From Octopus bimaculoides (taxonomy: Eukaryota): DNA of 64,000 bases. The position numbers and the translations under genes are program-made. The notes below the pieces were generated by a model. It saw only the letters and a program-made list of their open reading frames with translations, ran no database searches and was not told the origin of the DNA. This document shows positions 255 to 23,365 of the stretch, piece after piece. Location of the stretch: positions 7,094-71,093 of the forward strand of contig NC_069007.1 of the NCBI RefSeq assembly GCF_001194135.2, in the 5' to 3' direction. Every line of letters begins with the position of its first letter. Within the stretch, counting starts at the first letter, position 1.

Positions 255-639
255 GTCTTTCAGAACAGAGTGACTCCTTAAAATGTCTTTAATTCTTTTT
301 GAGAAATTTTCTTCTTCCAAAAATTCACCATAGGTTTATACAAACAAGGGCATATCTTCTGTAAAACATCCTGTCTTAAATCTTTAGAAGATAACAATGA
401 TGATGTGTCTGAAGTTAAGAATTCATTTCTGCCAAGGTCGTCAAATGTTCTGAAACAATAGAAAAACAGAATAAGAGACAGAAGGCACAAAAATATGGTT
501 AACATTAAACTGTGCATATTCTCTAACTTTCTATATTGGTTTGAAATATTGGCACAAGGCCAGCAATTTCAGGGGAGGGTGTAAGTTGATTGTATTGATC
601 CCAGTGTTCAACTGACACTTACTGCATGACAGGCCCTCA

Positions 640-795
640 TGCTAGTGGCACATAAAAAGCACCCACAACACTCTCGGAGTGGTTGGCGTTAAAGAAGAGC
701 ATCCAAGAGCCTGGTGAAGCCACCTGGCTTGCCAGTACTCAGTCAAACCGTCCAACCCATGCCAGCATGGAAAGCAGACGTTAAGCGGTGATGAT
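640..795 (+). mobile_element. RTE-LINE 3' tail / short interspersed repeat
   Basis: gagtggttggcgtt...ccaacccatgccagcatggaaagcagacgtt followed by a (gat)n tail; the same motif recurs at about ten places in the window. Confidence 0.75.
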
Positions 796-1615
796 GATTA
801 TATATAATATATTGCTACACCATAGAAAGTTTAGGTAAACTTCGTCACTCACTCTCTTTGTTTGTTTAGGAGGTGGGGAATTTCGGAAAATCCACCGGAG
901 TCCACTTCAATTCGCCTTAACTTTCAACAAAATTTATATTTTTTAATGAAATTCTATACAAATATACCTCGGACTATGTACATTCTGAAAAAACTTCAAA
1001 CGGGGAATTATTCCATTCAATATCATGATTTCTATAGAGATTATGTAACAAATTATACTTTACACTTCTATATTTAATTGTGCGTCGTGTATATTCCTTA
1101 TTTCTGATTCGGATGTCTTCTGCCTTTCTATTAGAAACTTTTACCTGGGAATTTACTTCAAGTGAAAAATGAATCGTATGCAACAGTTAAATCGTCTTAA
1201 TAACAGATTTCTGTTTACGAGACCTTTAGCTGTTATTTTTAGCATAACGAGTTTTCTGGTGAGGGCTTTAGTTTCGTTTCTTGCCAGTTTGTTGCTTCCG
1301 TAGAAATGTACGGATGCACAAAAATTTCCTATTATTCCGGGATGGAGGGTGTCTAGTTTCCAACCCACCCTTTTTTCCATAAGGGGTTTGCAGCATATTT
1401 GGAGGTCTGGGTACTTTATTCCACGCAAAAAATCTGAGATTTTTTTTTTTTCTCAGTGAAAGAATCAAATAACAACGATTGTTCTTACAAATATATTAAG
1501 AACAATGTACGAAGTGGATACTATCATCGATGGCTCATTTCAGGAGAGTAGTGGCTGTACATTTGTGAGGGGCAACTCTTTCGTCCACTCCTTTAATGCA
1601 TTACATAAAAAATAT

Positions 1616-1791
1616 GGTACTACTAAAGCAGCGCGGACCCGAACGCGCTAGCTAGTCGTGAGTGGTCGATCCTAACCCTAAGCCTAAACACGTATTCATT
1701 TGCATACGCGCACACGCGCGCACTTGTCGTAGGATCGACTACTCACGACTAGCTAGCGCGGACGCGCGACCACTCTTCTTTAGTAGTACCC
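1616..1791. mobile_element. Palindromic CpG-rich MITE-like element with octamer motif
   Basis: Arms 1644-1674 and 1730-1760 are reverse complements with one mismatch, and the similarity extends outward to ggtactactaaag / ctttagtagtacc. The loop contains cctaaccctaa and ATTTGCAT (1698-1705). Confidence 0.65.
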
Positions 1792-1816
1792 GCATAGTCT
1801 ATATGTGTGTGTGTGT

Positions 1817-2017
1817 NNNNNNNNNNNNNNNNNNNNNNNNNNNNNNNNNNNNNNNNNNNNNNNNNNNNNNNNNNNNNNNNNNNNNNNNNNNNNNNNNNNN
1901 NNNNNNNNNNNNNNNNNNNNNNNNNNNNNNNNNNNNNNNNNNNNNNNNNNNNNNNNNNNNNNNNNNNNNNNNNNNNNNNNNNNNNNNNNNNNNNNNNNNN
2001 NNNNNNNNNNNNNNNNN
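1817..2017. other. Assembly gap (N run)
   Basis: Run of N flanked by (GT)n and (TA)n. Confidence 0.99.
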
Positions 2018-2434
2018 ATATATATATATAAATCGAGTCTGTACACACAATACAACGAAAGTTATAACAATTTTTAAACAGTAGGTGCTTCTGTCCTTTG
2101 TTCTGCAGCAGCAGGGGAAACTATAATAGGGGGCAAATCAGTGTGATAAAGGTTAACACCTTCTTCCTCTAGGGGCTGCATCCCGGACATGACCCCTGGC
2201 TGACCTTCTGCTCTTTTTAGCCACTGTGCATTTAAAACCACCTCGAGAAATTTTTAGTCGAACGAAATCGAACTCCGAACCTTTTATCTCCTTTAAGTCT
2301 GTTTTTTTATTATTATTATTATTATTCTATGGGTCTTTTAGGCCGAACCGCTAGGTTACGAGGTAGTAAACACCGGTTTCAAGCGGTGGCGGGGAACGAG
2401 CACCTACGCTCAGACACATACGTAGAGTCGGGAC

Positions 2435-2552
2435 ATGTATTCATTTGCATACGCGCACACGCGCGCACTTGTCGTAGGATCGACTACTCACGACTAGCTA
2501 GCGCGGACGCGCGACCACTCTTCTTTAGTAGTACCCGTATAGTCTATATGTG
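2435..2552. repeat. Second, near-identical partial copy of the octamer/CpG element
   Basis: Matches about 1692-1816 almost base for base, including ATTTGCAT at 2443-2450. Confidence 0.8.
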
Positions 2553-2843
2553 TGTGTGTGTGTATTGTAGGGTAGTTTTTATATGGCTTTTGGTAGAGAC
2601 TGCAGATAAAACAAATAAAGCCAGTGGGGGAACACGTGTGGGTCTGCCAGTATCACTGATTCGTCATAAAACCCCTATATATGTGGGGTTAGGGTGCTTC
2701 CACCAAATTGATATAAACGAATAAATAATTAATGTATCAAAACAAAGACTCGAAGATGTGATAACATTTTAATTAATTTAATGGTGCATATTAGTCTTTT
2801 TTTAATAAACTAAGTATATATTAAGAAACTGTAGATAAATATG

Positions 2844-2980
2844 ATTACTTTACCATGAATAAATGCTTCCTACAAAGCAGACTGTTCGTCCGATGGAAGC
2901 GATTATAAACGTCATATTTCGCTGGTCCGAGCTTCGTCAATGACACCATAAAGGCAATCTCTCTTGACGCATGCGCATGG
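2844..2980 (-). promoter_or_regulatory. Putative promoter and first exon of ZNF-A
   Basis: NRF-1-like ATGCGCATGCG near 2969-2978 and ATGGTAAAGTAAT at 2856-2844 on the minus strand; the same arrangement lies upstream of ZNF-B and ZNF-C. Confidence 0.65.
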
Positions 2981-3384
2981 CGAAAATTATAATTATGAAC
3001 ACACAGAGGTATAACTACACTTGAGTGCTCCATCAATTTATTTCCTTGCAACTAGCTAGCAAAGTTGTTAGCACGATGCTCGAAGTGTTTAGCGGTCTTT
3101 CGTGCATCTTTACGTACTGAGTTCATATTCCGCTGAGATTGACTCTTTTCAGGGTCGATGTAATCGGCTAGTTCCCTTCCATAGGTTTCAGACCTATGTG
3201 TCAAGTAGAAAGTTTCTTTGAACTCTGAAAGAAAAGCAGTTCATACCTTTTTAGTTTAAGGCTTTAAAGGGGAAAAAAATTATAGTGGTCAGAATTGCAA
3301 CGAATGATTTATTCAGAAAAACATGAAGACCGTACATATAATTAAACGTAAGATCTAGGCATAGCTGCTTAAGTGCTGACGTAG

Positions 3385-3480
3385 TTTTGTAGTAAGAAGT
3401 TTGCTTCCCAACCACATGTGCTTCGATTCAGTTCCCACTGTGTGGCACCTTGGGCAGCTGTCTTTTACAAATGCATCACA
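3385..3480 (+). mobile_element. tRNA-derived SINE fragment
   Basis: gtaagaagtttgcttcccaaccacatg...ttcagttcccactgtgtggcaccttgggcag; same family as 23612, 32258 and 33015. Confidence 0.7.
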
Positions 3481-3524
3481 GGACCAAACCATCGTAGTTT
3501 TTTCTCTTGCATACTACACCTGGT

Positions 3525-4219
3525 GGATCTTTCTGATTTGACGGCCAACACTTTTCATTTATGTTTTATGTAGTGTTTTTGGTACCGAAACACTTCCAAA
3601 CTTCGTATACTTGTATATTTTGTGTTATAGAACAGATAAAAATGTTCGTATTCGAAGTTATTTCATGTAAAAAATTGTCGCATTTCGGTAATTTTAACCA
3701 ATCACTGACGTCTATTGAGGTGAAAACAAATACTGCTGTGGAATGTAAACAACATATTCTAACGGTGTCATGGGATCTTTTCCCTTGAATAAAATTAGTG
3801 CTGTAGTTTGTCAACAACTATCGGTGGTACTTTTATTTATGACATCGTTCGTGCGTTTGTACTGGTTTTAGCTTTAGGGTTAGGGTTATGATTATTTTTG
3901 CCATAACCTCATTCCTAACCCTAACCCCCTAAACCCTTACTAGGGAATAATGATATAATTAAACAGAGAATAACACTCTTGACACCGGCAAAAATTATTG
4001 TTTACAAGAAGAGCAGTAACTGTATTCAGCTGAATAGACGTCAGTGATTGGTTGAAATTACAGAAATACGACAACTTTAACATGAAATAACTTGCGATGT
4101 ACAATTTTTTGTTAAGGTTAAGAGAAGAAGTTGTTTCATATGACACATTCTACCAGTGTCCCAAGTTTGAAAGTGTTTCGTTAAGAAAACAAGTGGTGCC
4201 CGTCAAATCAGAGAGATCC
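3525..4219. mobile_element. About 700-bp non-autonomous TIR element with telomere-like core
   Basis: TIRs ggatctttctgatttgacgg / ccgtcaaatcagagagatcc; internal inverted repeat aaccaatcactgacgtc; central ttagggttagggtt and cctaaccctaacc; a second copy lies inverted at 54409-55113. Confidence 0.85.
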
Positions 4220-5639
4220 GCAGATTGTATAATGCTTGTGTAAAGATGACTATCCTCTATAGTAGTGAGATATGGGCCTTTATTGCAGAGGGGTCGTGCC
4301 TCTGAAATGGGGGAATCCTCAACATAATTGCCGCATGGAATGCCATGTCGACCGTGGATGTGTTTGCCGCTGGGTTGTGTTCTGGGCGAGCCATTATGTG
4401 CCGATTAACCACAGGAATTTTCCAGTTCTAATTCATTGCCGGGTGATGTGAAGGCTGTGATCGTTTGACAGGGTCACCAAATGTAGCAGGCTGGATGTGG
4501 TGTGCCATATCAATGTGATACGATGTAGCCCACTACTAAATATAGTGTATAGATGTAACGCTTCAAGGTTCTCCCGTCGGAGTAATCAGTGTACATCGAA
4601 GAATTAACACCAAGAAGGAAGAAATGTTATTTACATATATTTATTTGTTTACCCGACGGTTTGTTAAAGAGACAGGAGCAATGCTAGTGATAGTGACGAG
4701 GAGGAGGACTCGCTGGTTAGTAGTTGATAAGTAAAAAAAGTTTGTCTGTCAGTAGAAAGGGAAAGAGTAAGGTAGTCATAGTGCTGACTAGAAAGGATAA
4801 AGGCAGTATCGCCTTTCTTACAGCCGAAAGCCTCTCTTCACATGTCGAACGAAAGGCAAAAGGAAGTGCTGCTCTTGGTTAAGGCTGACGCAAAAGAGCT
4901 GGTGTTGCTTCTTGGTCTTGCTGACACATAAGGGGAAGAGATAGAAAATTCTCTCTGTTATATAAGCTATGGTCAGTAATGTGGGTTAAGCCTTAAACAA
5001 AGGACTGACCTTTTCTTGACCAGTACAAGTCCTAGGAGGTGGAGTGTTTCCTCATCAATCATCTATTGTAGAAGATTTCTCACTCGTTTTGACAAGCAGC
5101 AATCCGGTGGATTTGGTTTCAAATCTCAAGCAGGGTCAAGCTAGACTCTTACACTCTGATGGATGTGCAACATCAGTGCGTAAAAACTAACACTTCCTTT
5201 CTCCAAGCTTAGATTCGAAACCAAATCTAAGGATTCTCGTCTGACCAAACAGGCACGAAAGAATTTTCTTTGTCCTGTCAAAAAATTATGAATTGTCTCC
5301 CCTTGACCGACGACCTCAGCCTTGTCAGGCGAATTTCAAATGAACAGGAGCTGACCTTCCTGCAGCATGTCTGTCTTTCTAGCTGCCACGGCTGTTATAA
5401 ACACCGTGGTCAGCAAAGGGACAGGCAGAAAGGATCTGGGACTAAGCTGACCAGTGTTTTCTCAGATGAACAACGCCCACTGACACAAACCATTTCCAGT
5501 TGTACATCATACACACAGATGTATACTGTCTAAATTCTTCTCCAGCTCGAAGCTGTTTGCAATAAATTGATGTATTGGAAAATTGTGTAGACCAACAGCA
5601 AGTGCAAGTCCCGTATATACATTATTTAAACTATAAATC

Positions 5640-6438
5640 GATATCATTCCATTATTTACTTGGAAGGCATCCACATGCATGATTAGTTAGGGTGAGTTTT
5701 AGGGCGTAATGGAAGTGACAAAGGAGTATATTTGGCATATCCTACTTCATGAGTTCAATAAAGGTAACAACACAATGATATTCCTCACACAAAGTGTGAG
5801 GAATATCAAAGCAGTATATAGGGATAGGACAAATAGCATAAGCCAGTGTCAATGGTGGATCCAGAAATTACAAGCTGGAAAATACGGCCTAGAAGACGAG
5901 TGTCGTCCTGGAAGATCTGTAGAGCTCGACAAGGACGTCCTGGAAACCTTGGTGGAACAAAAACCTGTAACTGTTGAGGAACTAGCAGAGAAGCTTGGAT
6001 TGGGTCGTTGAAATCGGCACTAGAAGAAAAATGACCAAGTTTTTTACCAAGAGGAAAGGTGTTGTTCTTTCAGGATCATGCTTGGCCACATACAGCGAGG
6101 ATGACATTCCAAAGGCTGGAGCAGTTTGAATGGGAAACAATGCCTCACCCACCATATTCACCAGACATTACCCCATCTGATTATCATTTATTCTGTAGTC
6201 TTCAAAATTATTTGGATGGAAAAAATATGGAATCTGTAGACGAGGTCAGAACAGTACTGGCAGAATATTTTTCATCACAGACAAGTGAATTTTGGAAGAG
6301 GGGCCCTGCGAGTCTGCTAGATAGTGGAGGAGCATTGAAGGGGAGTATATTTTAGATTAAAAAAGAATTTTATTTATCTTAATTTTGAAAAATAAAAGAA
6401 GTATAAAAAAACTGCATTATGTATGGGATGACCCAATA
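5640..6438 (+). mobile_element. Degenerate mariner transposon
   Basis: ORF 5709-6011 encodes a mariner HTH region; ORF 6059-6355 has QDHAWPH and HPPYSPDITPSDYHLF; right TIR gcattatgtatgggatgacccaata followed by TA. Confidence 0.9.
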
Positions 6439-6689
6439 TATATATATATATATATATACATACATTTATGTATAGATATCAGCACACTTGTTCTCATCTC
6501 CTTTCTAGTTACCTCTCTCTGGCCAGGTAACCATGCACCTCCTCTATAGAAAAACACGTTTCTAACTTTGTCACATTCCAACCTTTTATCATCTGACACA
6601 AGATCTCTCCCACCTCCTCTAACGCCCTCTCCCCTCTCAAAATTCCTTGTCTTGAAAGTTTCTTGGTGACCCCAGCCAGTGCTGGTGCC

Positions 6690-6960
6690 CCATAAAAAGC
6701 ATCCAATCAATACTGTAAAGTGGTTGGCACTTGGAAAGGGCATCCAGCTGTAAAACCCATGCCAAAACTGACCTCGCCTGTGCTGGTGCTACGTAAAAAG
6801 CATTGAGTCCACTCTGCGGAGTGGTTGGTGTGAAGAAGGGCATTCAGCCGTAAAAGCCCTGCCAAAACCAGACAGTCGTCTGTAGTAGTCTTCTACCTGG
6901 CTGGCTCCTGGCAAACCGTCCAACCCATGCCTGCACGGAAGGCAGACGTTAGATGATCCT
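6690..6960 (+). mobile_element. RTE-LINE 3' tail repeats (tandem fragments)
   Basis: gagtggttgg...gaagggcat...ccgtccaacccatgcc...gcagacgttagatgat. Confidence 0.65.
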
Positions 6961-7311
6961 CATGATATATAATGTTATGAAAAACTGCTTTCTTTTGTAG
7001 TTAATAGATTTATTTAAAAAATAAGTGATTTTTGAGAATACATTTCTCACCTGTTGAGTAGCAATGTCACATGTATTTTTTGCCTTTTGTTGAAATATAT
7101 TAGAATAAGTATGTCAGTATGATAAAAGAATGTTTTATTTTTATCAAAAAGTAGTAGTGATAAATTAACTCAGTTCTAGATAAACGGAGAGAAAATGTAG
7201 TTCTTGAAGGTTCTTATCACCATTGTACATTTTTTTTTTTCCAGTGAGAATATATTTAAATTTATATTAGATAAGTGTCAGAGAATGAGTTGTCATGCTT
7301 GTTTCAAGTTT

Positions 7312-7624: not shown

Positions 7625-8560
7625 TCAGTTCTTTCTTATATGAATGCATTTGTGTCTAGTTAAGTGAATAATCTGAGAGAATGATTTACCACAGATATCA
7701 CAGGGATATGGTTTCTCCCCCGAATGAATACGTTTGTGTTGTTTTAAGTTACTTTCTACAGAGCATGATTTGCCACAGATATCACAATGAAATGGTTTCT
7801 CTCCTGTGTGAACGCGTATGTGACTAGTTAAATTACCCTTTACAGAAAATGATTTACCACAGATATCACATCTGTATGGCTTCTCTCCTGTATGACTGCG
7901 TAAGTGATTGGTTAAGCAACTACTTACAAAGAATGATTTACCACAGATATCACAGCGATATGGTTTCTCTCCCACATGAATTTGTTTGTGATTACGTAAG
8001 ACACATTTATCAGAGAATGATTTACCACAGATATCACAGTGATATGGCTTTTCTCCAGTATGGGTCCGTATATGTTTAGCTAAAATATATGTTTGAGAGA
8101 ACGATTTATCACAGAAATCACATTTGTATGGTTTTTCTCCTGTGTGACTTTTTATGTGTCTTGTTAAGTGAATAATCTGAGAGAATGATATGCCACAGTT
8201 TTCACAGCGATATGGTTTCTCCCCTGTATGAATACGTTTGTGTTTAGTTAAGGTACTTCCATCGGAGAATGAGTTACCACAGATATTACAGTGATATGGT
8301 TTCTCTCCTGTATGAACATAGTTATGTCTAACTAAATGATGTTTATGAGAAAATGATTTACCACAAATTCCACAGCTATGTGGCTTTTCTCTTGTATGAG
8401 TAAATCTGTGTGAAGCTAAACTATCTGCACGAGAAAATGATTTACCACAGACATCACAGTGATGGGAATTAATACATTTGTGAGTAGTGAGTGTAATGGC
8501 CTTACAAAATGACCTTTTACACATATCACAGTTGTAGGATTTTTCTAACACTTTTGGCAT
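7625..8560 (-). CDS. C2H2 zinc-finger protein ZNF-B (311 aa; 10 C2H2 fingers plus an N-terminal C2HC-type finger; no KRAB/BTB/SCAN)
   Basis: Intact ORF with a tandem CxxC-x12-HxxxH array and TGEKPY linkers; acceptor tttcag at 8802 upstream. Confidence 0.95.
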
Positions 8561-9869
8561 GCCTTTAAGAAAAGAATGACTCCTTTGAATTTCTTTAGGT
8601 TTTTCACATAAATAAAATTTTTTTAGAAATGTTCTTCTTCCAACAGATTAATCACAGTTCGCAAAAATTCAACATAGATTTATGCAAACAAGGTTATATC
8701 TGTTCTGTATAACATCTTCCTTCTTAGTCTTTTAGAAGATAAATAATAATGATGATGTGTCTGAAGTTAACAATTCTGTTCTGTCAATCTCATTTGATGT
8801 TCTGAAATAAAAAAAAAAGGAACAAAATAAGAGACAGCAAACACTAAAAAATAAGTCTTCAACTGTGGAGATTTTACATTTTTATAATGATAACTGTAAA
8901 TCGTTAGACAGGTGCCCTCCCTGTATTCCAGGGGTAACTGGCCAACATTCTCCAGTTCCCTCTCGTTTATGCAGCATAGATGCATTCAGCCAGGCTTATT
9001 TGCAGTCCATTCTTTGATGCTATCAGTCTACAAACGTCTTTGATAAGCCTCTTGTTCATGTAGCGTGGTTAGGATGAGAGACTTCTTGCTAGTTCATATC
9101 CGTCATTTACTGCTACATTATTACAAAGGTGTTCATGTAACACAAGAAGAATTAATTTTACAGATGCAGGAGATCATCAGAAATTTGATATCTGGGTTGA
9201 TTTTTCACATCAAATGCATATTCAAGTTGCCATGGTATAAGTTCTTCACTTATCACACTGCGTTGAATATAAAGCTGTGAGAACAGCTCTTAGGGTCAGT
9301 CATGCTGGGATGAGTATGTTAGCTGTGAAAAAAAACTAGTAGTGAAAGAGAAATTCACCCAGGACCAGCTGGGTGAATTTACTCTGGCTTTTTTTACACT
9401 AAAAAAATGACTGATGCCATTCAATCATGTGAACAAAGAGTTCTGATTGGCTGAAATAGGTTCTGCATGTATGATGACCTCATGGTTTACATGTGGTCAA
9501 AGGGGAGCTGAAATTAACTGTTATATCAGACCCCTTTCAGTCGAGTTTGTAGGAAAACAAAGGCAAAAAGTGAACAATTAAGAACAGAGAATGAAAATGA
9601 ACAGCAGAAAAAACGCAAATGCAAAAAAAATATTGTCCACGGAAGAGAAAGTTCACGACAAAGTCTATGCTGTGGGGTTGTTTTTTTTTTTTTTTTTTTT
9701 TCATTTCTCTCAAATCAAGATGCTTACACTCTGTCGAACATGCACACAAACATTACACATCCAGCAAAGCAGACTAGCTTCATTTCTTTCAAGGACATGC
9801 ACAGGCTTGGAAGAAATGAAGCTAATATGTTTTGCTGGATGTGCAATGTCAATGTGCATGTATGACAGA

Positions 9870-10350
9870 GTGTAAGCGCCTTGAAAGAAAAGTTGGGCAT
9901 AAGAGGCATCAGATGTGGTGTTGCGCTGGTATGGTCATGTGATGTGTTTGGACAAGGACAGCTGTGTAAAAAAGTGCTGATCTCTGACTGTGGAGGGAAC
10001 CTGTGAATGAGGTAGATCCAGGAAGATATGGGAGCAAGAAGTGGAGCATGATCTTCGAACATTGGGCCTCATGAAGGCAATGACAAGTGGTGGAGACCCT
10101 TGGCAATATGCCATGCTTGAGAAGAAGACCCATCAAGCCAAGTGAAAGTATAGTCCTGGCACCTGTGTCGGTGGCATGTAAAAAGCACTCTTTACATTCT
10201 TGGAGTGGTTAGCATTAGGAAGAGCAGCCAGCCATAGAAACCATGCCAAGTCAGATTGGAACCTGGTACAGCGCTCCAGCTTGGCAGTTTCAGTCAACTC
10301 ATCTAACCCATGCCAGCATGGAAAGCAGATGCTAAATGATGATGGTGATG
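9870..10350 (+). mobile_element. RTE LINE 3' end (decayed coding end plus 3' UTR and (gat)n tail)
   Basis: Decayed RWYGHV / GRSRKIW-type coding end running directly into the gagtggtt...ccatgccagcatggaaagcag tail and gatgatg. Confidence 0.75.
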
Positions 10351-11211
10351 ATGATGATGATGATGGTTGTGCATCGTTTTTAAAGTTAACTAAAAATAAT
10401 AGGTGTGCATATATTTGGTCATTCAAAGAACTCTTCTGCCACTTTGTGTAATTCTGTCTGAAATATGTGTATCTACAGGTGTATTGATAGTGAATGGTGT
10501 GTCACATGTATGCATAGGAGGTGTGGATGTGGTAGAAAAAGGAGCAGGGTTTTTGCTGATAGGGTGACAAATTGATAAAAACATGCTTCAATTGATTGAT
10601 ATACATAGTCTATCCAACACCACGAATTTGGGTTTCATTTTCAATACACAAAAGGGAAGCCATAGATTTTAGTTTATGTTGAGTATTTTTTTTTTTTTTA
10701 GTCAATTTTCATTAATTTTATATCCTGTGCCTTCGTTCGCTGCCCCTCTTTCAAATTATGTGGCATTGCTGATGTCTAACAGTTGATGCTAATGTATATG
10801 AGTCTTTTTTTCAAATGTAATTCGAGAGAATTGAAGCAGCAAATTCACCTTATCACAAACTTACTCATTTTGCCCAGGATAAATTTGTCTTTAATATGCT
10901 CAAAGAGAATGGATATAATTTTCTGAAATAGTGATCAGATTATGTTATAAAGCTTTTAATGCATTTAGGAAAGGCCATTAGCTTAGCTGATATAGAATTT
11001 GTAAGGTGATGAACATTTGCAAAAAATGTGTTGTCTCAAAGTCAAAAAAATGCAGTAAAAACACCTCATCTTGCCCCCCCCCCCCATATATACATGGCAG
11101 GGGAGGTTATGGGCCACTAGACATTTGGGTCCGAAGAGATTCTGTAAAGCTAAGCATTTTATGGGTGTGAAACCCGGGGTAACCCCAAGGACGACCATAA
11201 CTATCTTTAAT

Positions 11212-11252
<41 letters not shown>

Positions 11253-11307
11253 TTATGAATTTATGTTGCAAGATTCCTGATGTGAAGTTGTGTGTTCAAA
11301 CAGATAT

Positions 11308-11635
11308 TGTTGTATTTCGGGATGGTAATTTTTTTTTCGTTCTTCAATCATTTATTACTGTTCTTATTCTAACTTATGTCAACTGTCCGTAAATCTTTCA
11401 TCACACGTCTGTGACCTCCTCAGCGACACTTTCTGTCTTGTGTGCTCTTGCTCTGCCTATTCCATTCACACAAAGACAGAAAGTGTCGCTGAGGTGGTCA
11501 CAGGTGTGTGATGAAAAATCTCCAAACAATGTACATTAGTCAGAATAAGAACAGTAATAAACGAGTGAAGAACGAATATATAGTACATGTTTATTTGAGA
11601 TGAAATGAAAAAAATGACCATCCCAAAATACAACA
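11308..11635. repeat. About 330-bp imperfect palindrome (MITE-like hairpin)
   Basis: Core arms at about 11396-11444 and 11467-11516 are near-complementary; outer matches tgttgtatttcgggatggt / accatcccaaaatacaaca and tttattactgttcttattct / agaataagaacagtaataaa. Confidence 0.85.
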
Positions 11636-11650
11636 TATATATATATATAT

Positions 11651-12352
11651 AATGGGTCATCCCATAAGTAATGCTTTTTGTTTTCAATTGCATGAAATAA
11701 AAGTCGGAGGGGGATATGATTAACTACCAGCATCAACTTGCTTTAAAAGCCGGTAGTAATTTTACCTTGTCCTTATTCTTGGTGCAAATTTTTAAGAGTG
11801 CAGTTCGATTTTGTTCTTTTTTCTAAGTGACAAAGGTGCATATTCGGCATATTTTGCTTTATGAGTTCAATAAAGTCAACAACGCAACGTAAAGTGCGAG
11901 GAATATTAATGCAGTATATGGGGATCGGACAGTAAACGTAAGCCAGAAATTCCGAGACGGAAACTACAGCCTAGAAGACGATCCTAGTCCTGGAAGATCT
12001 GTCGAGCTCGACAAGGACGTCCTGCAAACCCTGGTGGAAGAAAATCCCATCGTAACTGTTGAAGAACCAGTAGAGAAGCTTGGATTTGGTCATTCAACCA
12101 TTCATCGACACCTACGTGCCATTGGAAAAGTCAGGCAAATTGGGTCAATGGGTTCCTCACAAACTTTCCGAGTGAACGCGTGCTCTTCTTTGCTGTCGCG
12201 TCTCACAAATGAACCTTTTTGGGACCAAATAGTGACTGGAGACGAGAAATGGGTTCTCTAAACGAAAGAATGCCGAACTTTGTTTATCTTAAATTTGAAA
12301 AATGAAAGAAGAATAAAAAAAAAAACGCATCATTTATGGAATTACCCCTTAT
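11651..12352 (+). mobile_element. Internally deleted mariner transposon
   Basis: TA-flanked TIRs (tgggtcatcccataagtaatgc / gcatcatttatggaattacccc); encodes the HTH and IVTGDEKWV but lacks the rest of the DDD domain; same family as 5640-6438. Confidence 0.88.
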
Positions 12353-12581
12353 ATATACACACACGAAGGGCTTCTCCTCTGTTTCCGGGTACCGGATCCA
12401 TTCAAACGGCTTTGGTCGGCTCCCATAGTGTCATGCAGGGGCAACACACCCAGCTATTGGAATGAACTCGCGTAACCCGTAATGTGTTCATTCATATATG
12501 AATCTAGGGCAGTCGTCATTTTGACAAATTGAATAAAAAATATAATCTTGTAAAAGTGAAAGTGGAGACTAGGAAAATCGT

Positions 12582-12771
12582 GGATTTTCATGGATTTCGA
12601 CAATATTTTTTTTAAAGATTTGTCCCAACGTTTTTAAGCGCGTATTGCAAAAAAAAAAAAATCCCCAAAAGTTCGTCCCGGATGCTCCAGGTGGGGCTTA
12701 AATAAAGTTATAAATTTTCAAGCGCTTCTGAGACAAAAAATTAATAAATCCCGTCAAATCAGAGAAAATCC
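12582..12771. mobile_element. Short TIR element sharing termini with the 3525-4219 family
   Basis: Right end ccgtcaaatcagagaaaatcc; degenerate left end ggattttcatggatttcgac. Confidence 0.5.
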
Positions 12772-12844
12772 AACTTAATTTGGCGACTTATTCCAGGCCT
12801 CCGCACACCTTCTAAACATAGGGTCACACCCACAATTTGTCCGG

Positions 12845-12883
<39 letters not shown>

Positions 12884-12976
12884 GATCACCGAAATGATAC
12901 ACATTCACATAATACAGAAGATAAATCTACTCTAGTAAGTAAATATACATATATAATAAAACAGGAGATTAATGTC

Positions 12977-13115
12977 ATTACTTTACCATGAATATAGGCT
13001 TCATACCATGTAAAGAAATTTATCGATGAACGCGATTACAATGAAAGCCAAGACGTTCGCTGCGCGATTCTAATGGATGTGAAGCAAGGCAACATGTTTG
13101 CGCATGCGCATGAGG
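12977..13115 (-). promoter_or_regulatory. Putative promoter and first exon of ZNF-B
   Basis: Perfect TGCGCATGCGCA at 13099-13110; ATGGTAAAGTAAT with ATG at 12989-12987. Confidence 0.7.
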
Positions 13116-14010
13116 AAATAGCAGCAACAATTCTTGAAAGTCTCAAAAGTATTTTCTATCAATTTTGAGAAGATCGAAACTTCGATTGTTAATAATTAAC
13201 ATCCAAATAAACGGAATCGTGTTTCCAGTGATTCATAAGACGTGCTTGGACGGGATGCGTTGTTCTATCCATGTACTTTTACAATCAATAAACACATGGA
13301 TGTATTAAATTAATTCAAATAAAATTTAAATGAAGACATTCTATTCATATATATTTCGATACATGGAGATAAAAAAAACTGCGAATGTCAGTGTGTCACA
13401 CCTTTTCAACTTTATTCCTAGACACTGTAGCCCAACAGGCCGACTCCGAGAGTAAATTAAAAACATTTCCGGGCCGAATCATCAGGACCCGCAATCACGA
13501 AATTTTGAAGTCAAAAGTTTTAATTAATGCGATTGTTTTCGGCCCTTTTTTTTTTCCATGGGACCCGACGCGCGCACCCGCACAAACACGCACGATTAAA
13601 AAAGAAAGCCTCTACATGTTTGAATATGTGTAAATTTTCTGTACTCCCATCACACTGTTGAATCTGCGTTTTGCATTTTTCCAGTAACATTCAACTGAGT
13701 TTCTTTGGAGGGAAAAATATGGGAAAACAGGGGATGAATGTTTTCAGAACATTCTAAAACCTCTTTCAGAAGGGTTCACTTTTCTTTGACTACTTTTGAG
13801 TAAGATTTTATTTCAAAATTTGTTTTAGTTTCACTTTTCGCCTAATTTTGCTTAGATTGCTTTCATTTTTGGTGTATCGATACAACTCTGATTTTTGATT
13901 ACGATCAACCAATTACTTTATCTCGTAAATCAAAGAATCTGATGTTATTTGGAATTAATTATAGTTGGGTAATTTTAGCCAATCAACAGACAGCGTGGCA
14001 TTAGCAGCTT

Positions 14011-15829: not shown

Positions 15830-16400
15830 GTGCAGTTGGCATTTTTCTTCAGGAAATCTAAATGTGATCTTATACAATCATCATATTCTGCTCTCTATGA
15901 ACGGAAAATGATGATTGAAAATTTCGCTTATTATTTGATTCTTCTATTTCACTGTGTTCTCGAAATGGTAATTCTTGACAAGCTAACATTTCAATACAGT
16001 GAGTTAATCATTTCAATATATCATGACTTGTTTATGCAACTTTCCCAGAGATCAATTGCAATATCAATTTGTTGTCAACCAAAGGTTTACAGAGCAATGA
16101 CAGAATTCACAAGGTTCTGAGATTTCTTGTATTTTGCCAGAGCTGTAAACAAATTGCTCAAATCACAGTAGCCAGTAGTTATCCATGGCTTCTTATGTTG
16201 ACAAAATAACAGACATGGGGAACAAAACAATTTGTTTCGTATGGGACAGCTTGTCATCCACTCATATTGTTCAAAATAACGATGACATTTCTTGCTACTT
16301 ACTTTAGTTTTGATTTTCCAATTCAAGATTTGGTTTCTCTCTTCCAAGAAAAATAATCTTTTTCTCTTTGAAGCTTCTTGTTACAAAAGGTCGCGAAAGT
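15830..16400 (-). mobile_element. hAT transposase remnant (TTF-type zinc finger plus DUF4371-like region)
   Basis: YEWMTSCPIRNKLFCSPCLLF...W...G; downstream LACQELPFREHSEIEESNNKRNF resembles the LAxQxLAFRGH motif. Confidence 0.75.
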
Positions 16401-17379
16401 CGAGAGGAAGCAGAGTCAATTGACACTGTTGCGATTTTGTGGGTAAATGACATTCTTGAAAAATGCTATTGGATTTTAATTTTGTTTTTTATTTTGATGA
16501 ATCAACACAAGTCTAGCTAGGAATCTAATAACAAAATTAGAATCTAGTTTACTTATTTATGTAAATTTCTTAAAAATTATTTTAAAAGCATTGGAATTAA
16601 TAAATGGATAAAAATGTTACCTTTTAACCACAAAATCAAATTCACTAATGAATTCTGGATAGTGGTCACATGATTAAATTCCATGGGGTAATGGTGACTT
16701 TTGACCCCTGAATAGGCAGTTAAGAAAATAAGCAGGAACAAGAATTGTATTACTCCCTATGTTTTGACCCTTTTTTTCTCTTTTCACTCCCTAAAAGACA
16801 GCAGGCAAGTTGTCTATCTTTTGAATTCTCCAAAGGAATGCAAGTATATTTGCTTTCTTTAGCGGTCCTACAATGCCAATTTTTTTAATTAACAGCTGCT
16901 GACCAATTCAATTCCTTCTGTTTACAGAGGCGTTCTCTTGTACACTGAGAAGCAAATGGTTTTCTGCATGCTGTGTCTGTTCGGAGACCAGAAGTCCTAA
17001 TTCATTCATGCGACCACTTCCCAGGGGGAAATGAAAAAAGAAACAAAAATCCATTGGAAAATTAAGGAAAGTTAAAATTATCAATAATTAATTTTACATG
17101 AAACAAAACTTTATTTATCCTAGAAAAGAAGGCATGCAACGCATACATGGACACCACATGTCTGTAGCGGTGACCACTTCCCAGCACCCGCCATCATCAC
17201 CACACATACCCCTATATGAGCAGTGACACATTAGAGGCACACACTTACTCACCCAGACTTGTCAAAAACTGGCCCCTATTCACACACACGTTCCTTCAGT
17301 TGGGAGGTGGGGGCACTGTGACTTTATTATCGACCTTCCTTCTAAACTCTTCTTCCAATCAGTTGCCATGCTTGATTAC

Positions 17380-17530
17380 TAAATCTGCAGGGTTTTTTCT
17401 TTCATTCTCTCTTATTCCCCTCTGTTGAAGAGCATAGGTTTGAAACATAAAAGACTTTTTCGTTTTTTTATATTCCCAAGTGTCAAACTTAATACACCTG
17501 TCTTCATTTTTTGTTTTTCTATAAATTTCA
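17380..17530 (+). mobile_element. Penelope-like terminal repeat fragment
   Basis: ctgttgaagagcataggtttgaaacataaaagactt; homologous copy at about 33540-33720. Family assignment is from recalled similarity only. Confidence 0.45.
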
Positions 17531-17659
17531 TCTATATACATATGTATATTTGTGTGTGATATTCTATAAGATGTTTCGTAGAATTCGTTTTGACAACGAT
17601 AAGGTTATTCTTCTCTTTTGCAATTAAGAAACATTTTTTAATTTCGTTTTTTTTGGAGT

Positions 17660-17960
17660 GATTTACAATTGATATCACATGAGTGTTATAGTTTCCCTCT
17701 TGTATGAATATAATATGTGTGTAGTGGAGTGACTCCCTCTTGAGTGTGATTTACCACAAATATCACATTGACATGGTTTCTCTTCATCGGTGCATTTGTG
17801 GCTGGTGAAGATATCTCCATCAGAGCAGCATTAATCAGATATCAGAGTGATATAGCCTTTCCATGAGAGATTTACAACAGTGATCCAGTATGAATGTGTT
17901 TCGTTGTAGTATTTCAGTGAGAAAATGATTTTCTACAAACACAGTGCAACTTGTTCCTCT
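17660..17960 (-). pseudogene. Decayed zinc-finger repeats downstream of the ZNF-C stop
   Basis: The minus strand reads EKPCQCDICGKSH and IHTRGKL*HSCDI, with stops and indels. Confidence 0.7.
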
Positions 17961-18139
17961 TATTTATGAGTAGTGGTGTTACCTTTTTATTTTGAGGATG
18001 ATTTTTTTTACATGTAAGACATTATGACAATGTAACATTCTTTTTACAACAGCAAAAACCAATCCTTTTATGTTATCTTATTTTGAGTTTAGCTAAGTTC
18101 CCAATCTGAGCAAACATTCTTTCCAAATCTATCGAAATA

Positions 18140-19660
18140 TTATGGCAGCTCTCCAGGGTGACTAAGTTTGTGTTTTTTTAAGAACCGATTTTCAGAGAAT
18201 GATTTACCACAGATATTACAGTGATAGGCATGTTCTCCTGTGTGATTAAGCCTGTGTTTTTTTAAGAAACGATTCTCTGAGAATGATTTACCACAGATGT
18301 CACAGTAAAAAGGTTTCTCGCCTGTATGAGTTCGTTTATGAACTTTCAAGTTACTACTTACAGTAAATGTTTTACCACAAATATCACAATGATATGGTGA
18401 ATCTCCTGTATGAATGTACATATGTCTATTTAAGTTACTAGCTATAGAAAATGATTTACCACAGATATCACAGCGATGTGGTTTCTCTCCTGTGTGAATA
18501 CGTTTGTGTTGAATTATGTTACTTTCAATAGAAGATGAATAACCACAAATATCACAATGATATGGTTTCTCTCCAGTATGAATGCGTGAGTGTTTTTTTA
18601 AGGTACTTTTTACAGAGAATGATTTACCACAGATATCACAGCGATATGGTTTCTCTCCTGTATGACTGCGTAAGTGATTGGTTAAAGCTCTACTTTGAGA
18701 GAACGACTTACCGCAGATATCACATTGATGTGGCTTGCCTTTAGCATGAATCTGTTTGTGATCACATAGGACACTTTTATCAGAGAATGACTGACCACAA
18801 ATGTTACAGTGAAATGGTTTTTCTCCAGTATGGATCAGTTTATGTTTGGTAAAGGAACCCCTGAAGAAGAAAGATTTCCCACACATATCACAGTGATAAG
18901 GTTTCCCTCCTGTATGAACATATGCATGCGCATTCAAGGCACTTCTTTCGGAAAAGCCATCACCACAGACATGGCAGCGATAAGGTTTCTCTCCTGTATG
19001 AACATAGCCGTGAGCAACTAAAGCACATTTCTGAGAAAATCCATCACCACAAATATCACAGTAATATGGTTTCTTTCCTGTATGAATATACTTATGTGCA
19101 GCTAAGAGGTTGTTTTGACAGAATGATTCACCACAAATGTCACAGTGATATGGTTTTTCTCCTGTATGGGTCCGTACATGTTGTGCCAAAGTATACGCTT
19201 GAGAGAATAACTTATTACATACATCACATTTGTATGGTTTTTCTCCTGTGTGACTCGTTATGTGTCTAGTTAAGTGAATAATCTGAGAGAATGATATACC
19301 ACAGATATCACAACGATATGGTTTCTCCCCTGTATGAATACGTTTGTGTTTAGTTAAGGTACTTCCATCGGAGAATGAATTACCACAGATATCACAGTGA
19401 TATGGCTTCGCTCCTGTATGAACATAGTTGTGTCTAGCTAAATGATGTTTATGAGAAAATGATTTACCACAGATATCACAACTATATGGTTTCTTTTCTC
19501 CCGTATGCGTATATTTGTGGGAAGCCAAACTATCTGCACGCGAAAATGATTTACCACAGACATCACAGTGGTGGCATCGGTGATTAGTGAGTGTAAGAGC
19601 CTTAGAAAAGGACTTTTTACAGATATTGCAAGTGTATAATTTTTGCACTGTTTTTGCCAT
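18140..19660 (-). CDS. C2H2 zinc-finger protein ZNF-C (506 aa; 17 C2H2 fingers plus an N-terminal C2HC-type finger)
   Basis: Intact tandem array with TGEKPY linkers; the first five fingers are paralogous to those of ZNF-B. Confidence 0.96.
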   Translation of the reverse strand: MAKTVQKLYTCNICKKSFSKALTLTNHRCHHCDVCGKSFSRADSLASHKYTHTGEKKPYSCDICGKSFSHKHHLARHNYVHTGAKPYHCDICGNSFSDGSTLTKHKRIHTGEKPYRCDICGISFSQIIHLTRHITSHTGEKPYKCDVCNKLFSQAYTLAQHVRTHTGEKPYHCDICGESFCQNNLLAAHKYIHTGKKPYYCDICGDGFSQKCALVAHGYVHTGEKPYRCHVCGDGFSERSALNAHAYVHTGGKPYHCDMCGKSFFFRGSFTKHKLIHTGEKPFHCNICGQSFSDKSVLCDHKQIHAKGKPHQCDICGKSFSQSRALTNHLRSHTGEKPYRCDICGKSFSVKSTLKKHSRIHTGEKPYHCDICGYSSSIESNIIQHKRIHTGEKPHRCDICGKSFSIASNLNRHMYIHTGDSPYHCDICGKTFTVSSNLKVHKRTHTGEKPFYCDICGKSFSENRFLKKHRLNHTGEHAYHCNICGKSFSENRFLKKHKLSHPGELP

Positions 19661-19684
19661 GTTTTTACAAAAAGAATCATTCTT

Positions 19685-19874
19685 TTAACCCATTAATATT
19701 CAGATTGCTTTGTCAAATGCAATGCTTATTTATTCAGTTTTGAATTAATCATGCATTATATTGTAGCTTAAAACTTTCAATGGCGTGTGTGTTTATTTTT
19801 AGATGATACAGGCTGGATCTAAAGCAGAATATTTTGGGCCAGATATGGCTGGTTTAAACAACCTAAAGGGTTGA
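19685..19874. mobile_element. piggyBac-type MITE in the ZNF-C 5' leader
   Basis: Ends TTAA-CCCATT...CTAAAGGG-TTGA, a degenerate TTAA/CCCT..AGGG/TTAA signature; no counterpart in the ZNF-A or ZNF-B leaders. Confidence 0.6.
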
Positions 19875-20699
19875 GTGTCTCAAATATTGTTTCGATATTT
19901 TTTCTCTCACCATAATAAATTAATAGTTTTCAAATTTCTGCTTTTATAGTTCATGGCTAACAAATATTTCTTTTGCTATATTTCCATCATCTGTGATATC
20001 TGACACCATCCAAAGATGGTGCAAATTCCTTTGTAAATTTACCCCAAGTTTATAGACAGGTCTAAAGAAATAGTTTACCATCAGTTTACATGAAAAGGGC
20101 TTTATGTTTCTTCTGCATAAGGTTTTCCTTGAGTCTTGAGACGATAATAATGATGATGCTTCTGAATTTAAAGATTCTCTTCTGTCAATGTCATCTGATG
20201 TTCTGAAACAATAAACAAACAAAATAAGATATATGAGGTGCATTCCAGAAGTTTTGAGATTTTTTTTGAAGGAGAGTCAGTTATAACTCTCTTAGATTAT
20301 TTGTAATTTCAGTATATCATTACTATCAGTTGTTTGTTTAGCGGATTAGCGTTTTCACTAACTTTGGAAACCATTAGCAGACCAATCAGCTTCCGCTAAA
20401 TTTCGTTCTGCTAACAAAATTCAGACGTTTGTTCCTGTCTTGAAGAGTCCATCAGGCACACTATTGGCTGAATGTGTGTGTACACGTGAGAAGACGTGAT
20501 TGGTTGATGCAGCAGCATTGTGTAATTCTGCAGTCTTGAGTTCTGTTCTCTTATGATGTTGTCACATTACAGTGACAGTGGTGTACCTTATTAGCTTATC
20601 GAGTTATTGTTATGAGGACATTTTTGTTCAGCTTGAGGATGAAGGGCCAGTTTAGGAATCTGCAGTGGTTGTGGGTGAGGTGGAGAGCAAAAGAGTCTC

Positions 20700-21230
20700 A
20701 GAACACATGGCTCCACCTGGAGGACTAATTTGTCCTTACATCAAGGGATAAGAGGAATGCCAAAATACTGTATTTCCAGTGCATCATGTGCCAGTCCAAG
20801 GAGACCACCATCAAGGGACAAGTGGGGAGCCTCTACAACTTGAAGCTACATGTCAAGAAGAAACACCCAGTACATGCCATCCACTTTGAGGAGAGGATTC
20901 AGCTCTTCCCGTGGGAAACACAGACAATCTTTTGGTAGCAGTGCCAGTAACCAGTCGTTGCAGCCATGTGCAAAGAAAGCATGCCCGCCTAGCATTGGCA
21001 AGGCTTTGACCAAACTGCTGACATGGGCGTCCATCAATCTATGGTGGACAGAAAGATTGTAGACCTGTTTGTCGACAACATGCTACCACTGCATGGAGTG
21101 GAGTTCCCCATCTTTGTTGGCTTGATCAAGATGCTGAACCCCAACAAGACATCAATGTCCTACCACACCCTGAACAGGATGATCTTGGCTGGACATAAAC
21201 AGCTGGAGGAGTATTTTTCAAGGCATTTAT
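20700..21230 (+). mobile_element. hAT (Ac-like) transposase remnant with BED finger
   Basis: CIMCQSKETTIKGQVGSLYNLKLHVKKKHP (BED-type finger), then DLFVDNMLPLHGVEFPIFVGLIKMLNP. Confidence 0.75.
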
Positions 21231-21999
21231 ACCACACAACCACACCTGCATCCTGTAGGAGAAATTATGATAAACATGTTTATATCATTTGTTACCCACG
21301 TATGTTTCACCGTTGTGGTTGTGCAGTGGAACCACACAGCACTGGAAATGCAACTGAAATGCAATTAGGCAGAATTCTGCTTCAAGTACACAGAAACCTT
21401 TCGCGAATGTCTGTTCTACACATGGGAATTCAATTATGCAAAACAAAAAGAAATTAAAAAAGATTTTTTTGTGTGATTTAAGGAGGTATTTAGCTGTTAT
21501 TTTTTAGCACATCTCACAATAACCAAAATACACAACTCCTTTGTTTGTAAGTCTGACGTATTGATGTTTTTCAATATCTTTCTCGTCATAAACACATTGA
21601 ATAGTCTATTGATGAGATTTAATAAAAAAAAAATTCCGACTGTCCATATTTTGAAATTGATTAAAATTTTCTTTTTATTAGTCGTGTGAATTCCCGTGTG
21701 TAGAATACAAATTTGCAAACATTTTCTGAGTGGGTCGTATTTGGCACGTTTTACTGTCGAAGCTGACTAGTTTGCAGAATGCATTTAGGACATGAAGACT
21801 GTACGGAAGCTTGCTCTGCAATAGAGGTTGTTAGTTTAAAATTATGATAGAAAGAACAAATATAGGAAAAATTGCGATAAACATGTTTATATCATTTGTT
21901 TTGCTTGAAACCTGCACTGGATGTTCCGAGTGCATTTGGAGGCCACGACAGAGCATCAAGGGTGTTTTTTGTGGCATTAAGTGATGCAGTAAAGTATTC

Positions 22000-22549
22000 G
22001 GCACTATCATGCTATTAGCTGTCAGAAGTGAAAGTGCTCACTGCTAGTGAAGTATCTGTCTGTCTGCCTGCATGCCTGTTGCTGGCCTGTCGATTCTTTG
22101 GCTACTGACAGCTAATACCATGACTGGCCGGAGCGAGCTATATGTCTGTCTCTCTCTCTCTCTTATCTATCTATCTATTACTCGAAAGTTCGCGCGTCCT
22201 ATTATTTTTAAACTTCAAACTTCATTTGTTTTCTATTTTGATAAATTCTCTCTGTTGAAAATTATATTTTTTATATTTTAGATAATTTGCAATTTCAGGA
22301 AATATGTTTTTATATTAAATTTGTGTTTTCTACTCACGACTAGCTAGCGCGGACGCGCGAACTTTCGAGTAATAGATAGATAGAGAGAGAGACAGACAGA
22401 CAGACAGATAGCTCGCTCCGGCCAGTCATGGTATTAGCTGTCAGTAGCCAAAGAATCGACAGGCCAGCAACAGGCATGCAGACAGACAGACAGATACTTC
22501 ACTAGCAGTGAGCACTTTCACTTCTGACAGCTAATAGCATGACAGTGCC
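22000..22549. repeat. Long inverted repeat with 200-bp arms
   Basis: 22000-22199 is the reverse complement of 22351-22549 with only a few mismatches and a microsatellite length difference; 151-bp AT-rich spacer. Confidence 0.92.
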
Positions 22550-22682
22550 AAGTATTTCCTGGCTTGTCGTTGTCGTTAATCACTCGGAACATCCAGGGTT
22601 GGGGTTCACACCAAACACAGGAAGATAATGATATAAACATGTGTTTATAGTGATTTTTTTTTATACACAAATGTGTGTGTCT

Positions 22683-22760
22683 GAAGGTGCATGGCCTAGT
22701 GGTTAGGGTGTTGCACTCACGATCGCTAGATCGTGGGTTCAATCCCTGTGGCGTTGCCAT
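22683..22760 (+). mobile_element. tRNA-derived SINE head
   Basis: ggtgcatggcctagtggttagggtg...gggttcaatccc with A-box and B-box-like motifs; no acceptor-stem closure. Confidence 0.6.
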
Positions 22761-23241
22761 CACTTCGAGATCAGATGTGTGGTAACGGGTAAGGTCGATC
22801 CGATGAAGTGAGTGAGCTAATTAATGGACAGCACAATACATTTGATTACTGCAAACAAATCATTTGTGCAAAAACTGTTGGTGTGTTTATGTCGAGAGAT
22901 TCCACCACACACACACACACAAACAAACATACACACACACAAACATACAGACACACACACACACACCAAAGATCGTCAATTTTCCGCTGCAAAATCGTAA
23001 GGTAAACCATCTGAAATGTTTTTTTTTTTTTCATAAATAAAACGTGTATTTTCAAGTTATGGGGGGGAAACAAAAGTTTAATTACGCCTATGTATTATAC
23101 TAGAAGGATCTGCTGTAATTAAAAGGACCATTCTCCCCTTTCTGGAGAAAAGGGTCAAAGGGAGATGTCGCTTTCACAACAGAAGCAGTAAAGATAAGGA
23201 AAAAATAGAAAATAAATAGTATGAAACCGTGGATAAACAGG

Positions 23242-23365
23242 ATTACTTTACCATGACATACAAACTGGACAATTTCGGCGATGAACGGGATAAGGATGAA
23301 AGGAATTCTTTTGAAAATAATCTTCGGAGCCTCAAAGAAGCCATGTCCGTTTGCGCATGCGTATT
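23242..23365 (-). promoter_or_regulatory. Putative promoter and first exon of ZNF-C
   Basis: TGCGCATGCG at 23352-23361; ATGGTAAAGTAAT with ATG at 23254-23252. Confidence 0.68.

Follow-up and report, generated by a model that had tools for sequence, protein, structure and literature searches.

A conserved 15-nucleotide motif as a putative first-exon 5' splice site in three tandem C2H2 zinc-finger genes of Octopus bimaculoides

The start of an Octopus bimaculoides chromosome record (CM046627.1, assembly GCA_001194135.2) contains four C2H2 zinc-finger (ZNF) genes, three of which, here designated A, B and C, are preceded by the same invariant stretch of 15 nucleotides (nt), TCATGGTAAAGTAAT. Our analysis of the surrounding 64,000 nt (the window, position 1 of which corresponds to position 7094 of the record and to which all coordinates below refer) indicates that in each of the three tandem paralogues this 15-mer probably acts as the 5' splice site at the end of a short exon 1 without coding sequence, situated below an NRF1-type promoter. 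The evidence for this assignment comes from the conservation of the motif itself, from the promoter-like block in which it is embedded, from the splice acceptors located downstream of it and from its predicted pairing with U1 small nuclear RNA (snRNA).

All three genes are encoded on the minus strand. The ZNF start codon of gene A is located at position 254 and its coding sequence (CDS; 507 amino acids, L002) runs past the left edge of the window, while the CDSs of genes B (7625-8560, 311 amino acids) and C (18140-19660, 506 amino acids) follow further to the right. A fourth C2H2 ZNF paralogue, gene D (CDS 30290-31705, plus strand, 471 amino acids), is arranged head-to-head with gene C and was included for comparison. 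In the existing annotation all four genes are single-exon CDSs that start at the ZNF ATG, and the same annotation models introns for the adjacent ankyrin gene. A single C2H2 ZNF gene gave rise to genes A, B and C by tandem duplication long ago, and the copies are spaced ~10.2 kb apart; their proteins share 63-80% of amino acids and the four-fold degenerate sites of their CDSs are 70-81% identical. Only two non-coding islands are common to all three copies, namely a ~190-nt block around the invariant motif and the splice acceptor together with the initial ~135 nt of the ensuing leader. The remaining shared patches in introns and upstream regions are either dispersed repeats or missing from one of the copies.

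A first-pass annotation of this DNA had pointed out an identical 13-mer, ATGGTAAAGTAAT, 2.4-4.2 kb upstream of each acceptor, and we were able to reproduce this observation with all of its coordinates. Exactly three copies are present in the window, all of them on the minus strand (2844-2856 for A, 12977-12989 for B and 23242-23254 for C), and the distances from the ATG within the motif to the acceptor are 2407 nt (A), 4188 nt (B) and 3052 nt (C). The number of copies expected by chance is 0.29 even if one mismatch is allowed, and three copies were reached in none of 100 shuffles. The invariant run extends beyond the 13-mer originally noted to a total of 15 nt (2844-2858 in A, 12977-12991 in B and 23242-23256 in C, all on the minus strand), and given that 28% of the other columns in the block are invariant, a run of this length has a probability of P<1e-5. 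The accompanying statement that the flanks of the motif have diverged was borne out by a flank identity of 0.47-0.53 compared with 0.46 for unrelated sequence, with the modification that several short motifs are kept at fixed spacing, among which the run is the largest. Judged by these comparisons, the 15-mer is clearly under real constraint.

The block surrounding the 15-mer spans positions 2799-3006 in gene A (the nhmmer envelope), 12932-13130 in gene B and 23197-23394 in gene C, in each case on the minus strand. Most of its columns have drifted, and only a few motifs with fixed spacing stand out from this mosaic. The first of these is a palindrome, GCGCATGCGC or a version with one mismatch, that contains CGCATGCG and occupies positions -120 to -111 in genes A (2967-2976) and B (13100-13109, where it is perfect) as well as -108 to -99 in gene C (23353-23362). 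Four matches to this palindrome were found in the window compared with 0.18 expected, and three of the four fall into the blocks of genes A, B and C. The second is a TAATCGCGTTCATCG motif at about -35 to -49, represented by TAATCGCTTCCATCG in gene A (2891-2905), by TAATCGCGTTCATCG itself in gene B (13024-13038) and by TTATCCCGTTCATCG in gene C (23279-23293). In addition, the blocks contain 8-10 CpG dinucleotides per 200 nt compared with a window mean of 3.2. On the basis of these features the block is best read as a compact promoter that lacks a TATA box, followed by a first exon of modest length with the donor at its end, and the palindrome as an NRF1-type site. Two further candidate identities were examined by reading the sequence and set aside: no Sm site is conserved downstream of the motif in all three copies, as a spliced-leader RNA gene would have, and the [AG]TATCCTT signature of a U12-type donor is absent. 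A search against Rfam identified no RNA family anywhere in the window. Additional ATGs on the minus strand are located further upstream in the blocks of genes A (2949, at -93) and C (23344, at -90, in good context), both in frame with the terminal ATG of the putative exon; if transcribed, they would give a 34-codon open reading frame (ORF) ending in MNI* or MNIR*, and gene B has no equivalent.

At the other end of the putative intron, tttcag|AAC acceptors with strong pyrimidine tracts place the exon starts at 449 (A), 8801 (B) and 20202 (C), as the first-pass annotation had described and as can be read directly in the sequence. The 11-mer tttcag|AACAT is invariant among genes A, B and C, and the acceptor is also present in gene D and in a ZNF gene of O. 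sinensis. Since the acceptors are conserved in all of these genes, an upstream exon is required. The proposal that the 13-mer forms the 3' end of this short upstream exon gains indirect support from three observations: it lies in the sole conserved upstream block, the palindrome is found ~110-120 nt upstream of it, and it holds the sole GT donor candidates that recur at one and the same position in every copy. With donor 1, the first of the two GTs in the motif, as boundary, the putative first introns would span 450-2853 (A), 8802-12986 (B) and 20203-23251 (C), all on the minus strand. The intron of gene C cannot be aligned to those of genes A or B, the intron of gene B aligns to neither of the others except for dispersed repeats, and the intron of gene A, which includes repeats at 620-801, 1688-1816 and 2433-2561, is likewise unalignable to B and C; the identity between these introns (about 0.46) is at the level of unrelated sequence.

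An assembly gap (1817-2017) is confined to the putative first intron of gene A and overlaps with no ORF in question, so that frame continuity is not at issue, but it makes the length of this intron an estimate and may conceal sequence. The sequence directly to its left (1688-1816) is a repeat copy that shares 98% identity with the one at 2433-2561, therefore the gap is probably situated in repetitive DNA. This CpG-rich repeat, which thus flanks the gap, has a third copy at 56103-56176 (81-85% identical), and the fourth GCGCATGCGC match of the window (56203-56212) adjoins that copy. Two families of dispersed repeats resembling short interspersed elements (SINEs), located at 620-801, 10156-10352, 32102-32196, 39351-39546 and 48192-48340 as well as at 3388-3468 and 23625-23704, account for the apparent conserved islands in the ZNF introns and upstream regions. 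Several candidates for additional exons were rejected accordingly: an island shared by the introns of genes A and B (645-801 and 10171-10352) is a dispersed repeat, the intronic CpG islands are repeats as well, and an upstream block common to genes A and C is SINE-like and absent from gene B. An extra copy of the acceptor 11-mer on the plus strand (13742-13752) has neither a pyrimidine tract nor similarity to the leader and was considered a chance match.

The first-pass annotation had regarded the motif as a feature of the whole ZNF family. Our comparison at this level covered three loci, namely gene D, an O. sinensis locus (L004) and another O. bimaculoides ZNF locus (L003), and the motif was absent upstream of all three. 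With nhmmer, neither an exon-1 block nor the 13-mer was detected in the 6.5 kb upstream of gene D, a region that includes a 151-nt gap (23890-24040), and a candidate first exon for this gene at about 27953 turned out not to be homologous. The first exon of gene D may lie in this gap, or the gene may share the palindromic promoter region of gene C. In O. sinensis, the homologous acceptor and leader were found at 9627-9769 of L004 (CM016876.1; nhmmer E=1.3e-15) immediately before the point at which the CDS of a ZNF gene other than those in the window is annotated to begin, with the sequence tttcag|AACATCA at the acceptor; no 15-mer with up to three mismatches and no NRF1 palindrome were present within 9.6 kb of this locus. 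At L003, neither the 15-mer nor the palindrome was detected. Because the leader is common to gene D and O. sinensis and the block is not, the leader exon is old, and the 13-mer block belongs to the A-B-C trio. On these alignments, the leader exon is conserved across species and distant paralogues even though it is non-coding. Searches with protein sequences contributed little to this comparison, as an N-terminal ZNF profile returned two weak matches and a full-length search retrieved mostly vertebrate ZNFs with two usable octopus proteins; a look-up of one further octopus protein returned no record.

The 15-mer offers two GTs for splicing, ATG|GT (donor 1; after positions 2854 in gene A) and AAA|GT (donor 2; after 2849), both of which are invariant in genes A, B and C. 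Scored with a simple position weight matrix that yields approximate values, donor 1 (ATG|GTAAAG) reaches 0.75 bits and donor 2 (AAA|GTAAT), which has neither G at -1 nor G at +5, about -2 bits, compared with 8.6 bits for the consensus. When the top-scoring GTs between 130 nt upstream and 400 nt downstream of the ATG were compared, no candidate other than donor 1 recurred at one position in each of the three copies. Positions -3 to +8 take part in the recognition of 5' splice sites, and registers with a one-nucleotide bulge have been documented (PMC4856993). In duplex folding with the metazoan-consensus 5' end of U1, which was assumed to apply to octopus, the preferred pairing in all three copies involved G-1, G+1, U+2, A+3, A+4, G+6, U+7 and A+8, with A+5 bulged. 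This register comprises 8 base pairs (bp) with a predicted energy of -6.9 kcal/mol compared with -14.4 kcal/mol for the consensus under the assumed U1 sequence, and positioned on donor 1 it would account for nine of the 15 frozen bases without a second donor.

The arrangement that we favor would place each of the genes A, B and C under the control of a TATA-less promoter that is compact, enriched in CpG and marked by an NRF1-type palindrome. Downstream of it would lie a short non-coding exon 1, probably under ~110 nt in length, followed by a GT-AG intron of 2.4-4.2 kb and one large exon that contains an upstream ORF (uORF)-rich leader together with the whole ZNF CDS. The 15-mer would represent the boundary between exon 1 and intron 1, with donor 1 (ATG|GTAAAGTA) as the most likely working site, which U1 snRNA would read in the one-nucleotide-bulge register G|GUAA(A)GUA. 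Such a register would explain the unusually long frozen stretch amid drifting sequence. The ATG would constitute the last three bases of exon 1 and, if used, would open an intron-spanning uORF of three to four codons (MNI* in A, MNIK* in B and MNIR* in C). Since this AUG would be one among many and carries a T at -3, most ribosomes would be expected to scan past it, so that the uORF probably arises as a by-product of the donor sequence or, at most, contributes in a small way to a leader that is repressive as a whole.

Several observations weigh against this assignment. Both donors are weak by the weight matrix, and the invariant TCAT before and AT after the U1-paired stretch are left unexplained by U1 pairing; their invariance could reflect selection on the AUG, on the second donor or on a site recognized at the DNA level. 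The assembly gap in gene A and the unaligned introns may conceal lineage-specific exons. Exact-protein look-ups for the ZNFs B, C and D returned the genome record only and no transcript contigs, exact look-ups of two ORFs in the leader of gene C (45 and 99 amino acids) returned no record, and with a profile of the three peptides predicted for splicing at donor 2, no database protein was found to begin with the spliced peptide.

The first alternative to be considered is that the 15-mer acts at the DNA level as a promoter-proximal site bound by a sequence-specific factor and that the true exon-1 donor or the transcription start lies elsewhere. About five zinc fingers could be accommodated on a stretch of 15 nt, which makes auto- or cross-regulation within the cluster conceivable; the run exceeds the canonical donor footprint and sits in a promoter-like mosaic of short motifs, it contains a direct GTAA repeat with one base between the units, and the low scores of both GTs likewise agree with a role other than splicing. 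The acceptors, however, need a donor, and no other candidate occupies the same position in the three copies, while the 8-bp fit to U1 is of a known register type. We know of no transcription-factor motif that matches the 15-mer. We consider a DNA-level site of this kind unlikely.

A second alternative, put forward in the first-pass annotation, is a translational switch in which the choice between the two GTs would toggle between a reinitiation-permissive uORF of three to four codons and a long, repressive uORF. In its favor, the -3 to +6 footprints of both donors together correspond to exactly the 13-mer, the invariant run stops at about the point where the footprint of donor 2 ends, and six invariant bases are left over after U1 pairing on donor 1. 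Furthermore, the AUG and an in-frame UGA three to four codons further on are retained in genes A, B and C, and both components have precedents, as tandem donors (PMC11162779) as well as 5' untranslated region (UTR) splicing that changes uORFs (PMC12219734) are already known. The reading frames predicted for the switch could be reproduced exactly: an ATG joined to exon 2 at donor 1 gives the tiny uORFs listed above, and ATGGTAAA joined at donor 2 gives ORFs of 59 (A), 25 (B) and 88 (C) codons that end at 278, 8732 and 19944, with all of them stopping ahead of the respective ZNF start codons (254, 8560 and 19660). The presence of an AUG with an in-frame stop before the main ORF holds only under the assumed splice.

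The individual components of the switch fared less well. Two functional donors are not supported by the sequence, as the low score and the missing G-1 and G+5 of donor 2 set it below donor 1, on which the best U1 register is positioned as well; the GTs are 5 nt apart and the second is not of usable strength. The long uORF does not behave as a conserved entity, since its length varies between 25 and 88 codons and no coding signature is apparent. Within the first 55 ungapped nt of exon 2, the variable sites at codon positions 1, 2 and 3 number 3, 5 and 7, respectively (7, 7 and 9 if gene D is included), which amounts to no third-position bias. Pairwise comparison over this stretch revealed 7-9 nonsynonymous codon differences compared with 0-4 synonymous ones, and the indels further along are frame-breaking, with a 4-nt insertion in gene B and a 1-nt gap in gene C. 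A profile of the three donor-2 peptides matched no resembling protein in a large protein collection. The lack of a coding signature indicates that the leader is conserved at the nucleotide level, and the purines that predominate at its start (GACAGAAGAGAA) would be compatible with an exonic splicing enhancer. The exon-1 AUG and the tiny uORF are kept in three copies, whereas the long donor-2 uORF is not conserved.

The leaders in the ZNF exons also argue against reinitiation at the ZNF ATG after the tiny uORF. They comprise 195 nt in gene A (255-449, minus strand), 241 nt in gene B (8561-8801, minus strand), 542 nt in gene C (19661-20202, minus strand) and 402 nt in gene D (29888-30289, plus strand, behind the homologous acceptor tttcag|AACGTC), and contain 4, 4, 13 and 10 further upstream AUGs (uAUGs), respectively. 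With 4-13 AUGs in the leaders of the trio, a ribosome that resumes scanning past the tiny uORF would meet many more starts before the ZNF ATG, irrespective of which of the two uORFs was used. The context of the exon-1 AUG is weak (T at -3), in contrast to the strong ZNF AUGs with G, G and A at -3, and in genes B and C other AUGs are found 5-20 nt upstream of it. Together with the absence of the motif from gene D, from the leader-sharing O. sinensis gene and from the other ZNF locus, these findings leave nothing beyond the presence of two GTs that favors a two-donor switch, and we regard it as quite unlikely. Similarly doubtful in our estimate is the more general proposition that the 15-mer is more than a splice site, either because both GTs are used with a 5-nt shift of frame or because the AUG and UGA form a selected minimal uORF.

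Two further explanations appear far less probable. The ATG could be the remnant of, or an alternative to, a coding start that reads through the leader into the fingers, with the present stops reflecting recent decay. This would agree with the first ~55 nt of exon 2 being kept without indels across genes A-D and O. sinensis, and with the ZNF frame matching the donor-1 frame in gene A and the donor-2 frame in gene B. Measured from the exon start, however, the ZNF frame differs among the copies (195, 241 and 542 nt; 0, 1 and 2 modulo 3 in A, B and C), the leader contains 3-14 stops in the ZNF frame, its substitution pattern is non-coding, and in all four genes as well as in O. sinensis the ZNF ATG is annotated as the CDS start, which renders a coding remnant very improbable. 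Least credible of all is a 15-nt identity devoid of function that has survived by chance or through gene conversion of a small patch, within duplicated DNA whose four-fold degenerate CDS sites still agree to the extent given above, since the length of the run is far outside expectation for the block, the introns have reached random-level identity and gene conversion should have homogenized the flanks as well.

Further features of the leaders were noted in the course of this analysis. A second small uORF of eight codons, with its AUG at +9 of exon 2 and its stop at +35, is present in genes B (8767-8793), C (20168-20194) and D (29896-29922). Gene A is without the +9 AUG and has an AUG at +24 (415-426) in the same frame and with the same stop. 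In genes B and C, the tiny uORF from donor 1 ends in a UGA that overlaps the +9 AUG (AUGA), as would be the case in gene D too if its exon 1 ended in ATG. A pyrimidine tract and AG directly precede the ZNF ATG in genes A (255-330), B (8561-8680) and D (30010-30289), while a GT is found near leader position +122 in genes A (ATG|GTGAAT), C (ATG|GTAAAC, 19661-20081) and D (CTG|GTGGAT) and none in gene B. These elements hint at a putative additional small intron that would alter all uORF predictions. The leaders of genes C (19700-20080) and D (30020-30260) share a segment, e.g. ACAAATTTACAAAGGAATTT.CACCATCTT, that is not present in genes A or B and accounts for their greater length of 542 and 402 nt compared with 195 and 241 nt.

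Elsewhere in the window, a 341-nt inverted repeat pair (3547-3887 and 54770-55100) is 93% identical across 51 kb and presumably represents a dispersed element. The adjacent multi-exon ankyrin-repeat gene spans ~34358-44358 on the minus strand with an annotated product of 535 amino acids, and an ORF within it (43861-44358) matches Pfam ankyrin families. An ORF of 257 amino acids (63135-63908, minus strand) had no match in Pfam; its sequence may resemble the C-terminal part of ORF2 proteins from retrotransposons without long terminal repeats. A 698-nt assembly gap (59267-59964) is bordered on both sides by TA/CA-type microsatellites, and the long apparent ORFs in this region are artefacts of the N run.

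If exon 1 ends as proposed, the value would lie mainly in annotation, as a promoter, a first exon and a 5'-UTR intron would be placed for three ZNF genes currently annotated as single-exon, and the leader exon has been found to be common to octopus ZNF paralogues and species. Cephalopods have undergone a massive expansion of C2H2 genes that attracts broad interest, and the regulation of these genes is poorly understood; a conserved NRF1-type promoter and uORF-dense leaders would offer starting points for its study. If both GTs were used or the minimal uORF were selected, a translational gate would be hard-wired into this ZNF subfamily, and in case of selection on the AUG and UGA, the AUGA overlap in genes B and C would couple termination to reinitiation at the second conserved uORF. 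The two-donor switch, so far predicted from the sequence, would be a neat mechanism if true.

Precedents exist for 5'-UTR introns, for tandem donors and for uORFs that depend on splicing, and in this respect the octopus case is an ordinary feature of gene structure. Its closest counterpart at the level of the splice site is the non-canonical recognition by U1 in bulged registers (Tan et al. 2016, PMC4856993), to which G|GUAA(A)GUA, with 8 bp and one bulged A, would correspond. Such a register, predicted here by duplex folding with the assumed U1 sequence, would explain conservation to about +8 or +9. Tandem 5' splice sites such as the STAT3 delta-3 donor (PMC11162779) similarly present two nearby GTs inside one conserved motif, whereas the octopus pair has a spacing of 5 nt, a putative location in the 5' UTR and a very weak second GT. 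Control of uORFs via 5'-UTR splicing, as described for RBMXL1 (PMC12219734), and minimal uORFs resembling an AUG followed by a stop share with the octopus genes an AUG and a stop that straddle a 5'-UTR intron, with the difference that in octopus the splice is an assumed one and the same leader holds many other uAUGs.

With regard to the promoter, the octopus blocks resemble TATA-less promoters of the NRF1 type (GCGCATGCGC) in that a CpG-enriched patch contains, a fixed distance ahead of the putative exon end, a palindrome that is perfect or deviates by one base, with both the transcription start and binding by an octopus NRF1/Ewg homologue being putative. The overall gene structure proposed here has a close parallel in clustered C2H2 ZNF genes with a non-coding first exon and a 5'-UTR intron, such as the KRAB-ZNF genes of vertebrates. 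Unlike these, the octopus genes have no KRAB or other effector exon, and their whole CDS is contained in the last exon, starting 195-542 nt into it behind the uORF-rich leader. Under the proposed structure, both systems would have a small first exon devoid of coding sequence, an intron several kb in length and a finger array in a large terminal exon; both are tandemly duplicated, with splice sites that are kept while the introns decay.

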